In this document: positions 32,131-38,600 of the stretch, piece by piece
Numbering within the stretch: the first letter of the stretch is position 1
How the letters are laid out: each line of letters begins with the position of its first letter
NCBI GenBank assembly: GCA_001643675.2
Contig: LSRY02000016.1
Location: 1 to 64,000, forward strand
DNA length: 64,000 bases
Reading direction: 5' to 3'
Origin: Monocercomonoides exilis PA203
Lineage: Eukaryota > Protista > Preaxostyla
The notes under the pieces: generated by a model
Database searches by the model: none
Told to the model about the DNA's origin: nothing
The model's input: the letters and a program-made list of their open reading frames with translations, nothing else
Translations under genes and position numbers: made by a program

Positions 32131-32803
32131 CAATCATCATGAATTCACATTCAACAACAATTTCACACTTGTGATCTTTGTTGTTCTTTCACTCTGCAGT
32201 ATTTTCTCAAATTCATTTCAACGAGAAAGTATCTTTAAAATATTTTTCGAACTTCATGCAAGAAAACTTTTGAAATGAAAATAAAATAACATGAAAACAT
32301 TTATAACAAACAAAAGTATTTGCTCTCAAACTTGTTTTAACTGTATTTTTGTTTTCAACAAGCAAACGCTAAGATGTGAAGAAAATGAATTGATCATTTA
32401 CATAAATGAATATTTGTCAATGCGAAATTTTCAAAAATAGAAAAATGTTTCAATAACATTGTTAAATATTGTTTGTTGATAAAGTGTGAACCAATTGTTT
32501 TTGATTATTTCATTGTTTCACTAAAATACAGAAAGTTCAAAATACCAAAAAAGCGAAACTCAACAGATAAAAGAAAAACCTATCTTATTGATGGATGCAA
32601 ATGTTTAATGAGCATTTGCGTTTATTCTAAAATACATTATTTAACCAAAATAATTCATTTCCCCATCCGAAGATAAACGATCAAAATTTTGGTCAAACTT
32701 ACAAAAAAAAATACTTTATTTATGAAAAACATAACATAAGGCATATTCACAGAGAACGGGGCAGCTTTGATCTGACCCATTAATATAATAATATATTTCA
32801 AAT

Positions 32804-33871
32804 ATGTCAAAGGAATTGCTTATAAAATTTCTTGATGAGGATAAAACATGGGAATGGCTTCATGAAAACGGAATTATTTCAAAAGAAAGGAATTGTCCGG
32901 ATTGCCACAAGCAAATGAAATATGTCAAAAACACAACATCTCAAAGAAGATTTCGTTGCAGGCCATGCAGAAGATCAATAACAGTTCGAGAAGGAACTCC
33001 TTTTCAATGTTCACGTCTATCAATGAGCGAATTAATGCTAATTTTACTATTTTGGTGGATTCATATGGACCAACTTCAATGTTTGTTTCTTTGTGGTGCA
33101 TCTGTTAACGCAGTTGGAGATTGGTACAGAATTTGCAGAAGAGCATGTGAGTTTCATTTGCTAATGCATCAACAAATGATTGGAGGCGTTGGCAAGGTGG
33201 TCGAGATAGATGAAGCCATATGGAGACGCAGAAAATATGGAAAGGGAAGAAGGAAGGTTCAATTGTGGATATTCGGAATGATAGAAAGAAGTTCTGAAGA
33301 AGAGAAAGGAAAGGTCTTGCTTTTTCTTGTGTATCGAAGGACGAGAAATGTTTTATTACCAATCATAAAAAGGCATGTTCATGCAGGGACAGAAATCCAT
33401 TCTGATGAGTGGAAGGCATATTCCACATTGTCTGATAATGGATTTGTGCATAAAACGGTAAATCATTCAAGAAGATTCAAAGACAGATTTACAAAAGCGT
33501 GTACGAATGTTATAGAAGGAACTTGGTCACGAATGAGAAGATTTATGCCAATGCATGGTGTCAGAGAAGCTCACATAGCTGAGTATTTAGCATCATATGT
33601 TTATGTCAAACATTTGAAACCGTCTTTTATTGATTTTTGTAAGGTTGTGTGTGAATATTCTGATTCGGAGTATGTAAAGGCTGTAGAAGCAATAGATGAT
33701 GGGGAGGAAGATGATGACGATGACGAAGAAATAGAAGACGACGTGGAAAATTTCGATGAAGAAGAATCAAGTTCAACAGAAGATGAAGGATCGGAAATGG
33801 ATGCCGGAGATGGAGCAGATGCAAGTGAATGGGAAGAATTGGATATTGATCATGAGAAAAGAAAAAGATAA
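32804..33871 (+). CDS. Merlin/ISXO2-like DDE transposase, 355 aa, with acidic tail
   Basis: Zn ribbon CPDC..CRPC; VVEIDE, WIFGMIER, IHSDEWKAY, HKTVNHS and TNVIEGTW motifs; single exon. Confidence 0.95.
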   Translation: MSKELLIKFLDEDKTWEWLHENGIISKERNCPDCHKQMKYVKNTTSQRRFRCRPCRRSITVREGTPFQCSRLSMSELMLILLFWWIHMDQLQCLFLCGASVNAVGDWYRICRRACEFHLLMHQQMIGGVGKVVEIDEAIWRRRKYGKGRRKVQLWIFGMIERSSEEEKGKVLLFLVYRRTRNVLLPIIKRHVHAGTEIHSDEWKAYSTLSDNGFVHKTVNHSRRFKDRFTKACTNVIEGTWSRMRRFMPMHGVREAHIAEYLASYVYVKHLKPSFIDFCKVVCEYSDSEYVKAVEAIDDGEEDDDDDEEIEDDVENFDEEESSSTEDEGSEMDAGDGADASEWEELDIDHEKRKR

Positions 33872-34089
33872 GTTTTCATATTTTTTATTTGATCGACATT
33901 TTCAACCATTTCCCACATCGACTTACATCAGAAATGATTATTTTTGAAAGAGATAAGCATAAATATAATTGTTTTAATTTCATTTGCATTCAATTATTTT
34001 TCTTAAAATTTTTTTTATGCTGGATTTTTGGTTTTAAATATTAATTAAATCTCAGCTAGGTTTAAGTTGAGAGATAAGGAAATAAAGCT

Positions 34090-34187
34090 GGGCTTTGGCT
34101 CGAGTAGCGCAAGAGGTCGCTCCCTCGACCATTGATATTCCGTTGGTCAAAGGTCGGGGGTTCGACTCCTGCCAAAGCTCTTTTTTT
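34090..34187 (+). ncRNA. tRNA-like / Pol III type-2 small RNA (~91 nt) inside the Merlin element
   Basis: Terminal stem GGGCTTTGGC (34090-34099) / GCCAAAGCTC (34171-34180). A-box-like TAGCGCAAGAGG at 34105-34116, B box GGTTCGACTCC at 34159-34169, T7 terminator at 34181-34187, plus internal hairpins. Confidence 0.75.
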
Positions 34188-34803
34188 CTGTGTTTTTTAT
34201 TATTATTTTCTTAGAAATTTTTTTGCCCCGTTCTCTGTGAATATACCTAACATAATATTTAATGTTGATGTGTTTTTGGTTCAAATTTGTAAAAAAATCT
34301 TTCATCGATAAATGCAAAACTTTCAGGCCACAATTAAAAAAAACTGATTTTTCTCAAAAGCACTGCCTTTTATTTAAAATAACTGGGGAATCTTGAAATA
34401 ATCAATTTATTTTGAAATATCTTTTTATTTCACAATTTATCTAATGTGTTTTTCTCTGACGTGATTGGCAGAATAGGAATTTTGACATGTTATTAGATAA
34501 AATGTGAAATAAATTGATCATTTCAAATTGTTTGTGTTATTTCAAGTTTCAGACACGAATATTAAATAAACACAGTTATTTTGAAATAACCGAGAAAAAC
34601 TTACATCTACTGAACGTTTTCAAGAAATCATTGAATTGCAATGTTTCTGATAAAATTATGGATGTGACCATGCTCGAAAATGTTTTTGTTTATATAATTT
34701 TATTACTCAAATTCGAATGTTTTCATTTTAAGTTAAAAAAAAAAAATTAGTGAGAAAACTTTGTTTCTTCCTCAATTTTTTGAAATTGAATTTTTAAAAG
34801 AAG

Positions 34804-35628: not shown

Positions 35629-38600
35629 GGCATAGGTCTGAATCGTACCATTTTGTTTTAGCCACTAGAAACTTTGAAATTTGTTTATTATTGATTGTTA
35701 TAATTTATATAAACTGATGTCACTCGGAATGAAGCAAAAAAACAATGTTGAAAAACTTAAAAAATTCAAGTGATCAATGTTCCACAATAAAATGTTTTCT
35801 CTATTTCATAGGGAGTTTTTTAACTTCAATGCTCTTTTAATGAGTTGTTGCATGTTGAGAATGCATATTTGATTTTATTTTTATTTAAATTTATGATTTT
35901 TATTTTTTGATCTTCGGAAAAGAAGGCTGTTGCTTTTCGCAAACTTTATAACTGAAAAAATAGTCAATAAATGCAAGATGCAACAACTGTTTTAGTTATT
36001 GGACGAACTCATTTATTTCGTGTGCGCGTAATGGATCAAAAACAACAGAAACGAATGATTCGTGGGAATACAATTCTTTTTCAGATGTTCAATTTTCTTA
36101 AGTGTTCCGCCATCAATAACAGTTTCGGTTTCACAAAGTTCTCTTTATAATTGTGTTATTTATAGTCTTGAAGGAGGAGTTCATTGTTTTAATGTTAGGT
36201 CAGTTAAAATTGTTAACAATTTCTTCAATTCATATCATGCACTTTTTTAATATGGAGGAGGAGGGGTGTATGCTTGCGAAATAATTTCATGTGCCCTTGT
36301 AAGTGGGTGCAGCTTCCAGATGTGCAAGGCTCGCTACGACGGGGGAGGTTTGAGATTTTACAATATCAGTGAACCTGGATCAGGGTGCATCTATGAAGAA
36401 GATGGAGAAGGAGTGAGCTCATGTGCATTTGACTGCAGTTTCACTTCATGCTCATTGACAAACAATGGAGGTGGAGGCATGTTTTGCAAAACTGTTCCTG
36501 CGACACAATTCAAAAAGAGGAGCGTTCAGTTTATTTCATGTTCAGCATTAAGAGAGGGAGGAGGATTTTTTTTCAGGCCAGAAAAATCAGAAAAGTCAGA
36601 TGATGGGTTCTATTGTTATTTCCTGTTCTTCCACGAATGCAAATGCAGAGATGCATCCAATCCATATGGTCACGATGCGTATTATGTCGATTATTACAAT
36701 GTTTTTTTGAGTTCCAAAAATCCGTTATATGATTGTTACACTACAAACACGGATGACAAGAGAGTGTGCTTTGCATACAACTTCTCGAATGCAGGTGACT
36801 GGACATATGATCAAACATCAAAAAAGGATTGGCTGAAAGATAAGACGATTTATGTGTCAGTGAATGGGAATGACTTGAATGAACTGTGCGGAGTGAATGA
36901 ATCATATGCGTGCAGAGCCACTGATGTTGCAGTCATTCGGAGCATGATCCAGGTGAGCCTGTCAGTCACACTGATGGAAGGGGATCATCAAAGGGAAGCA
37001 ACAACAATTGATATTGGATCAAAGAAGATTTCAGTCATTGGGAAGGGAAGGATGGAGAGTTCGATTGAAATGAAATCACTTTCATCATCAGCAGCAGCTG
37101 GAGCGCTATTCGGTGTGACGACAGGCCATCTTGGTTTATTGCGCATGAAGGTTGATTGTTACTCAGAAGCAGAAACTTCGCGGAGTGTGGTTGTGGTATC
37201 AGATGGAGGTGGGTCACTCTCATTGGAGGATGTTGTGATCACCACGAGTGTTTCTTCAGGAAATGTGATTCATTTTCAGTGTTTGTGGTGCCGATGTCAC
37301 GGCTGTTGATGGTCGGCGTGGAGACAAAAAAAGTCAATTGAATTGCATCTCCTTAAAGATTGAGTTGCCAACTTAAAGGGAACCGTAGTCAAAACCTGAT
37401 CCTGGAAGAAGCTGTTTCTGAAACGAAAAGTGCTTTTTTTTAATAAATATTCTTCACTCATTTGTTGAACTTTTAATTTTTATTTTTTAAAAAAAGAAAA
37501 CTTTTAAAACGACAAAATGTTAGAATTAATGTTTTCTTTTAAAATGAATTTTCACAAATTCGAAACAAGATCCAAAACAAAAACAAAACAAAACATTTGT
37601 GTGAAAAATTCATCAAACATGGCGCAAACATCAAGTGAATAAAAGAAAAATCGAACAAAAATGGGCAGGCCCAGAATGGTTTTGAATTAAAAAAAAACCA
37701 ACAATTTGAATGAGAAAAACCCTAGAATACAGAGATTGAAATCTCTCAAAACATCACAAAACAATTCCCTATGAATTTTCAAAGACAGATCCATCCCTTC
37801 ATGCATACCACAATTCAAATGCCTCCCCTTCCCTCATCTTCCTTCTCTTGTTTCAGCAAGCTCCACACCCTCTTCTTTTCTCACCTTTCCAAAAATACAT
37901 CTGCACCTCAATCTCTCTCAACAAACACATCTGCTCCATGGGGCATATGCCCATCCAGCATCCTTTCCTCCGCTTCATCCTCACCCCCCAACAACCTGCC
38001 ACTCATCATCCTCTCTCATTTCTTCTGTCTGCTTTTCTCAACCTTTCTGCTCCAAAACACACAGCATCCATCGCCTCCTTCATCACTGCCTGCAACCTTG
38101 CCAGTGTGGAATCATCACACTGACAAACATTCCTCACCCTATTTCTTTTTCCCTCCTCAACATTTCCACTTTGCGATTCTTTTTCTTCTCTTTCTTCTTC
38201 TTTTCCAAACTTCATAAAAAACATCGTCCCAATTATAAACCTCTTGCATGCTTGGCAAACTTTTTAGAATATTCTGCTCCTTCTTCATCCCTTCCGTTTC
38301 ACTGCTCCTTCTTCCACCACATTTCCGCAGCGCATTCAAGCCCCAATCCATTTATTTTCATTCTATTCATCTTCAATAATGTCCTCTTGAAAAAAGTCTT
38401 CCAACAACGCATTTCTTCTTCTTCTCCGTTGTTTTTACTGTTTTATTTGATTCATCAACCTTTCAAAATTTTCCTCTTGTGCATTCCTCTCATTCATGTT
38501 TTTCAAATCCTTTCCGAAAATACTATCTTTTCAACACACATTCCAATCCTTCTTTCCTTTCCTCCTTTCTGAAACCGCGATTCGCCTTTTCCAACATTTC

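Follow-up and report, generated by a model that had tools for sequence, protein, structure and literature searches.

A tRNA-derived unit with Pol III gene anatomy inside the 3′ end of a Merlin transposon lineage of Monocercomonoides exilis

Introduction

DNA transposons are normally described as a pair of terminal inverted repeats (TIRs) and a transposase gene. Why, then, does a Merlin element in the genome of the protist Monocercomonoides exilis PA203 carry, between its transposase gene and its 3′ TIR, a short sequence with the look of a tRNA gene, and what could such a sequence do for a mobile element? We examined this question in a stretch of 64,000 nucleotides (contig LSRY02000016.1, positions 1 to 64,000, assembly GCA_001643675.2; hereafter the window), and extended the searches to the whole genome, comprising 82,301,135 bases in 101 contigs. 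Monocercomonoides sp. PA203 has already been described as harboring more than 100 Merlin copies of at least seven families with 8-bp target site duplications (TSDs) (PMC8101967). The tRNA-like unit is absent from that description, in the main text of which "tRNA" occurs 0 times.

Results

The carrier transposon

The Merlin element occupies positions 32740-34247 of the window and is bounded by 24-bp TIRs. The 5′ TIR (32740-32763, forward strand) is at the same time part of the 5′ end common to the short non-autonomous copies (MITEs) of 407-410 bp presented below, and the 3′ TIR (34224-34247, reverse strand) is its inverted repeat. On each side lies the same 8-bp TSD, TAACATAA, at 32732-32739 on the left and at 34248-34255 on the right. 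An ORF of 355 aa on the forward strand (32804-33871) encodes a transposase of the IS1595/Merlin type with a zinc ribbon and an acidic tail, which matched PF12762 (DDE_Tnp_IS1595) in Pfam with E = 1.6e-23, and PF12760 weakly. The carrier therefore has the domain, the TIRs and a TSD within the 8-9 bp by which Merlin/IS1595 elements are recognized. At least 115 transposase matches were found genome-wide, and the window copy is the sole intact member of its own subfamily, being followed in the genome search by a pseudogene at 84-90% identity and then by elements at 46%. Elsewhere in the window, an ORF of 347 aa (36266-37309) has many GGG and Cys motifs and no Pfam match.

Anatomy and folding of the unit

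A preliminary description of this DNA, made from the letters alone, had reported a 91-nt unit about 220 bp after the transposase stop within the element defined by TIRs and TSDs. We verified its boundaries: the unit, which from its sequence, its 19 genomic copies and its fold we annotate as a tRNA-derived Pol III gene mimic, lies at 34090-34180 on the forward strand, in sense orientation, and starts 218 nt past the transposase stop codon. The parts that the description had listed, namely paired ends, a B box, an A-box-like hairpin, a GACCA/TGGTC hairpin and a run of seven T, were all recovered at their reported positions on the forward strand. The 5′ strand of the 10-bp closing stem (34090-34099) pairs with 34171-34180, with one G-U pair, in both the minimum free energy (MFE) fold and the centroid fold. 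The A-box-like segment TAGCGCAAGAGG (34105-34116) lies in a small D-arm-like hairpin with TCGAG/CTCGA flanks; it reads TAGCGCAAGCGG in most copies, and is near the D-arm of a host tRNA gene, TAGCGCAGCCGG. Since the GACCA/TGGTC hairpin shares 2 nt with CTCGA, both hairpins cannot fully form together. The B box or T-loop, GGTTCGACTCC (34159-34169), is a perfect match to GGTTCRANNCC and the only one in the 64-kb window, and this consensus is retained in 12 of the 19 loci carrying the unit (unit A). The T7 run (34181-34187), which resembles a Pol III terminator, comes directly after the closing stem in the window copy, and a T-rich run is present in all 18 aligned copies, with one interrupting base in five. 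A type 2 Pol III gene is recognized by an A box and a B box, spaced as in tRNA genes, and by a T-run after them; the unit has this anatomy, and most copies have all of these parts.

The unit folds with -44.1 kcal/mol (z = -5.5), and 0 of 200 shuffled sequences was as stable. The MFE fold consists of the closing stem and a long central hairpin, which uses up the G-run of the T-stem. The geometry of a 7-bp acceptor stem plus T-arm, as first proposed, thus stands as one possible fold, whereas the MFE fold leaves no T-stem for it. With the T-stem buried in this way, the promoter boxes may count more as DNA than as the T-loop of an RNA.

Origin of the unit

Neither the window nor any of the unit loci contains a tRNA according to ARAGORN, and Rfam gave no match to the unit at the gathering threshold and no tRNA-family match even at E <= 10. 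A 5-bp anticodon stem with a 7-nt loop was not found in the unit, the available hairpins of which have 9- or 12-nt loops; together with the negative ARAGORN and Rfam searches, this bears out the earlier remark that the unit has no canonical anticodon arm and is not a normal tRNA. Resemblance to host tRNA genes is partial, and involves the D-arm-like and the variable-loop/T-arm segments, which are closely similar to them. For example, the D-arm and T-arm resemble those of an intron-containing tRNA gene with the anticodon CAT by manual reading, which ARAGORN called Tyr with the anticodon ata. When a covariance model of the unit was used for searching, the next-best matches after the units were real tRNA genes, the top ones being tRNA-Arg and tRNA-Trp at 31-34 bits. 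Judged by these comparisons, the unit is derived from a tRNA and is not itself a tRNA, and the tRNA parts needed for decoding are lost from it.

Two readings as an actual tRNA had been considered as candidates. A functional, decoding tRNA was rejected on the negative results of ARAGORN and Rfam for the unit, and a tRNA-Sec on the same results.

Copies within the family

The unit has 19 genomic copies with 79-100% identity. The Merlin 3′ TIR follows about 43 nt past the unit, at the same spacing, in 17 of 18 distinct copies, the TIR of L018 being degenerate. Eight copies are complete MITEs of 407-410 bp with both TIRs and 8-bp TSDs, the latter perfect in seven. No copy was located away from a Merlin 3′ end, and none looked retroposed, which answers the question, raised in the preliminary description, of whether the unit also occurs outside Merlin. 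The same description had envisaged a dispersed SINE or a tRNA pseudogene present in one Merlin copy only; what we found were 19 copies, family-wide. As this distribution shows, the unit moves only within Merlin elements and their MITEs, and on the same grounds it belongs to this Merlin lineage as an integral and conserved component, and is no stray SINE or pseudogene.

Among the candidate origins, a tRNA-derived SINE was rejected because of the Merlin 3′ TIR at fixed spacing and the complete copies with both TIRs and 8-bp TSDs, and a one-off capture because the unit recurs across copies of the Merlin family. Separately, L002 and L003 (C30:604062 and 610299) are identical MITEs in inverted orientation, 6 kb apart and with the same flanks; judged by its flanks, this pair arose by local inverted duplication and not by two transpositions.

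Conservation within the family gave little sign of constraint on the unit. In the eight complete MITEs pi was 0.065 in the unit versus 0.064 elsewhere, indicating no extra conservation of the unit. Covariation, analyzed for two candidate folds in 18 copies, was not significant, neither fold being convincingly above shuffles, and weak covariation is what would be expected for dead copies. A few changes are compensatory: the closing-stem pair C16-G93 has become A-U in two copies of alignment A1, L015 among them, and the D-like hairpin holds 4 bp in two different registers across the unit-A copies. Thus, with neither extra conservation among MITEs nor significant covariation, selection is visible only between families.

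Sister families and Merlin elements without the unit

A sister family, B (L021 and L022; 11 copies in the genome), whose transposase has 46% aa identity, carries its own unit at the matching place, with a T-run and, about 55 nt further on, a related TIR. The 220 bp at the 3′ end of family B are colinear with the end of the family-A MITEs (MITE-A), in the order of TTAGGG boxes (L021:1225-1290), an A-rich stretch with AATAAA, unit, T-run, spacer and TIR. Five to six telomere-type boxes, TTAGGG(TT), are present in the internal 200 bp of MITE-A (L003-L008, L015, L017) and in this 3′ region of family B, and no TTAGGG box was found in the autonomous window copy. The unit of family B has the B box GGTTCAATTCC and a perfect 10-bp terminal stem, the 5′ strand of which is the A-box-like segment GGTCTAGTGG, another partner than in family A. 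This difference in stem partner means that pairing by the T-loop has apparently been maintained or re-established, and not inherited.

To extend the comparison across the genome, we used a pattern of GGGTTAGGGTT (two TTAGGG-type boxes), a gap of 80-110 nt and a B box, which gave 17 matches versus 0 in the reversed control. Four architectures, A to D, are represented among these 17 matches, and the 5′ sequences of their units are unrelated; families C and D are known only as 80-nt pattern matches, as are most copies of the elements X, W and Z introduced below. As far as these sequences reach, the sister families are shown to share one layout, and their unit sequences are very different.

Most Merlin elements do without the unit. 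In 26 further Merlin loci of the genome no B box or GC island was found downstream of the ORF, and the nearest outside relatives of the transposase (41% and 34% identity) had no unit. A metagenome scan for the motif common to units A and B yielded only chance or bacterial matches, with a best model score of 22.7 bits. Since most Merlin families of this genome and the outside relatives lack it, the unit is dispensable for Merlin transposition.

This dispensability, the uniform divergence and insignificant covariation in family A, and the fact that the unit is unusable as a tRNA are what one would expect of a neutral passenger, that is, a tRNA gene captured once by an ancestral Merlin, which is still tRNA-gene-like and is useless to the element. 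We regard such a passenger as rather unlikely. The A box, the B box, the terminal stem and the T-run have been kept despite transposases of 46% identity and widely different units; the perfect 10-bp stem of family B, with its new partner, points to pairing that was re-established; and the unit has been kept despite costly insertions at its edge, described below, in 9 of 27 copies.

A cis-acting transposition site is another possible role for this region. The autonomous copy and the MITEs have 43 bp in common at the 5′ end but about 196 bp at the 3′ end, the latter with 91-95% identity in closely related copies, and nothing between, as though the transposase bound a conserved 3′ subterminal region of about 195 bp, the tRNA look of which would be historical. 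This explanation appears very improbable to us, given that the unit sequences of A to D differ strongly while the TIRs are related, that the 5′ end has no counterpart to any part of the unit, and that retention of the promoter boxes and the terminator is left unexplained.

The 3′ end of the transposase gene

Immediately before the unit, on the forward strand, is a canonical poly(A) signal, AAATAAA (34080-34086), which overlaps both host poly(A) motifs, AAAUAA and AAUAAA; these are located 20-30 nt before cleavage sites, and the mean 3′ UTR of this organism is 312 nt (PMC8767320). With this motif and this offset, cleavage is predicted at or inside the 5′ edge of the unit. These data raise the question of whether the unit is an mRNA 3′-end signal, lying within the Pol II transcript of the transposase gene and either cut by RNase P/RNase Z, in the manner of mascRNA, or defining the poly(A) site. 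The position of the unit would suit such a role, as it lies in sense 218 nt after the stop codon, the mean 3′ UTR being 312 nt, with AAATAAA 4-10 nt before it in the window and AATAAA about 30 nt before the units of families B and C. Yet a canonical poly(A) signal just upstream makes a tRNA-like processing signal unnecessary, and MITE-A copies, which mostly have no poly(A) motif, keep the unit all the same. Moreover, the conserved A box, B box and terminator, along with the insertion footprints described in the next section, indicate an independent Pol III unit, and we consider an mRNA 3′-end signal improbable.

Insertions at the edge of the unit

In six unit-A copies, family homology breaks off at most a few nucleotides from where the unit begins. 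Two of the loci, L010 and L013, contain an inserted element of about 1 kb, termed X, with TIRs AGAACTT...AAGTTCT and a 3-bp TSD, 6-9 nt before the unit. Because sister copies supply the empty sites, the footprints of X, and likewise those of two further elements, W and Z, are insertions. X is non-autonomous, with TIRs of about 21 bp (AGAACTTG...) and an A/T-rich 3-bp TSD, and copies of it are located at L086:160-1135 (C5), L013:1607-2596 and L010:1607-2616.

A copy of X with 21-bp TIRs and the TSD AAT also precedes a genuine tRNA-Thr gene by 7 nt. We therefore searched for its terminus AAGTTCT followed, after 48-78 nt, by a B box, and obtained 24 matches versus 0 in the reversed control. At most of them a tRNA gene (for Thr, Gly, Pro, Gln, Arg or Leu, for example) starts no more than about 10 nt past the terminus, and the matches included unit A in L010 and L013 and unit B in L082; X is inserted at unit B of L084, too. 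The corresponding pattern for W (GTATTTGACACGC) gave 4 matches versus 0 in the reversed control, at three tRNA genes and at unit A in L014, and that for Z (CCCCGACTA) gave 12 versus 0, at tRNA genes and at unit B in L079. Z, which has GGAAACCCGRGCC subterminal repeats beside its terminus, adjoins unit A in L016 as well, and a further element, Y, a candidate member of this tRNA-targeting group, adjoins the units of L011 and L012. Altogether, 7 of 27 distinct units have an X, W or Z insertion at the 5′ edge, or 9 of 27 when Y is included, and X, W or Z termini are present at 12 of the 63 best Rfam tRNA matches.

The spacing of these insertions was then compared with that at tRNA genes. Termini of W and Z lie 4-10 nt upstream of genuine tRNA genes, and their A-box-based spacers at the units, 8 nt for W and 4-8 nt for Z, are within the range of real tRNA genes. 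X at unit A lies 14-17 nt from the +1 position defined by the A box, versus 5-10 nt at real tRNA genes. X termini elsewhere mostly adjoin other termini of the X/W/Z guild, and such abutting termini suggest pile-ups upstream of Pol III genes. From its targets, X appears to be a DNA transposon directed to the start regions of Pol III transcription.

Since X, W and Z land at the units as they do at real tRNA genes, the units behave as tRNA genes as far as the DNA is concerned, and binding of TFIIIC/TFIIIB is the most plausible cause. Of the three functions put forward in the preliminary description, a decoy RNA, a TFIIIC-bound chromatin barrier and a mascRNA-like processing signal, the insertions speak indirectly for the TFIIIC-bound state. 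The insertion targets have only tRNA-gene architecture in common, so tethering to the Pol III machinery is the simplest reading, and we infer, by analogy with Ty3 and TRE5-A, that X, W and Z are tethered in this way. Alternatively, the three elements could recognize tRNA genes by features of the DNA itself and need no Pol III factors.

Several X termini precede non-canonical tRNA-like sequences with a good B box (C37:392292, C42:663835/682804, C91:1075290/1077284/1239806, C23:429440 and C62:191300), and such a sequence at L072:1501-1600 was not called by ARAGORN. There may thus be further unusual Pol III genes in this genome. In L041 (2700-2840; C1:771135-774986), a broken old relative of the family-A transposase has kept the sequence that precedes the unit, and diverges exactly at the expected start of the unit; the break may stem from a deletion or from one more insertion at this place.

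Discussion

What, then, does this Merlin lineage carry? The explanation that we favor, and consider probable, is a remodelled tRNA gene that a Merlin sub-clade carries as a constant part, about 43 nt inward of the 3′ TIR, and that serves as a platform for Pol III factors or as a boundary. The unit keeps an A box, a perfect B box, tRNA-like spacing, an immediate T-run and a long terminal stem, from which it would be expected to assemble TFIIIC/TFIIIB and, probably, to give rise to a Pol III transcript of about 90 nt. The benefit to the Merlin element would most likely be at the level of DNA and chromatin, in that a platform of Pol III factors could hold the 3′ end and the TIR open, or block incoming transcription or silencing. 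In MITEs and in sister families, the TTAGGG boxes beside the unit would contribute to this effect. That tRNA-targeting transposons are attracted would be incidental.

A bolder version, which we put forward tentatively and hold to be possible though doubtful, is that of a portable Pol III/TFIIIC boundary, paired with telomere repeats in most members, which would protect both transposase gene and TIR against silencing or convergent transcription in a gene-dense genome, with the insertion scars recording its occupancy. As the autonomous window copy is without TTAGGG boxes, a picture of two insulators side by side fails for that copy.

Conservation of a Pol III gene mimic in several diverged families suggests that a mobile element can bring along a device of its own for setting chromatin or transcription boundaries. 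The second implication concerns the insertions: a guild of transposons in an amitochondriate protist targets the starts of tRNA genes, and at least one of its members has TIRs and a 3-bp TSD. To our knowledge, targeting of tRNA gene starts has so far been documented mainly for retrotransposons of yeast and Dictyostelium. Insertions of X, W and Z naturally report what counts as a Pol III gene, and, if the boundary reading is true, the scars left by at least three transposon families would amount to a genome-encoded record of Pol III occupancy.

The nearest parallels to the favored platform are found among Pol III-related insulators. MIR and B2 insulators, yeast ETC sites and tDNA barriers are TFIIIC sites derived from SINEs or B boxes, or tDNA boundaries. 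Like the heads of tRNA-derived SINEs and such TFIIIC sites, the Merlin unit has a tRNA-derived A box and B box on a mobile element, and an action through TFIIIC/TFIIIB is what we propose for it. Unlike SINE heads, it travels in a cut-and-paste carrier with TIRs and 8-bp TSDs, is placed at the 3′ side with its own terminator, and has never been retrocopied. The mascRNA of MALAT1 is a tRNA-like element at the 3′ end of a Pol II transcript. The Merlin unit is likewise a tRNA-like sequence in sense orientation downstream of a Pol II gene, although position alone matches: its Pol III promoter boxes are complete and followed by a T-run, and just upstream of it lies a canonical poly(A) signal.

The carrier itself agrees with canonical Merlin/IS1595 elements (PMC8101967) in its DDE_Tnp_IS1595 domain, in TIRs of 23-29 bp and in 8-bp TSDs, and differs from them by the unit that it carries, as it does from most Merlin families of its own genome, which are without one. 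As for the insertions, Ty3, TRE5-A and DGLT-A are reported to insert within a short interval upstream of tRNA genes (PMC5911963, PMC6101501, PMC5391098), and integration of Ty3 is reported to take place at TFIIIB (10.1101/2021.07.27.453949). Pol III-targeted integration has reportedly also been used to reveal sites of Pol III complexes elsewhere in a genome (PMC5391098). In contrast to Ty3, TRE5-A and DGLT-A, which are retrotransposons, element X, with its TIRs and 3-bp TSD, is a DNA transposon. Dada elements, which are reported to insert into tRNA or snRNA genes (PMC3706591), resemble the Merlin lineage in being DNA transposons with a specific relation to small-RNA genes; unlike Dada, this Merlin carries a tRNA-like gene within itself and inserts elsewhere.
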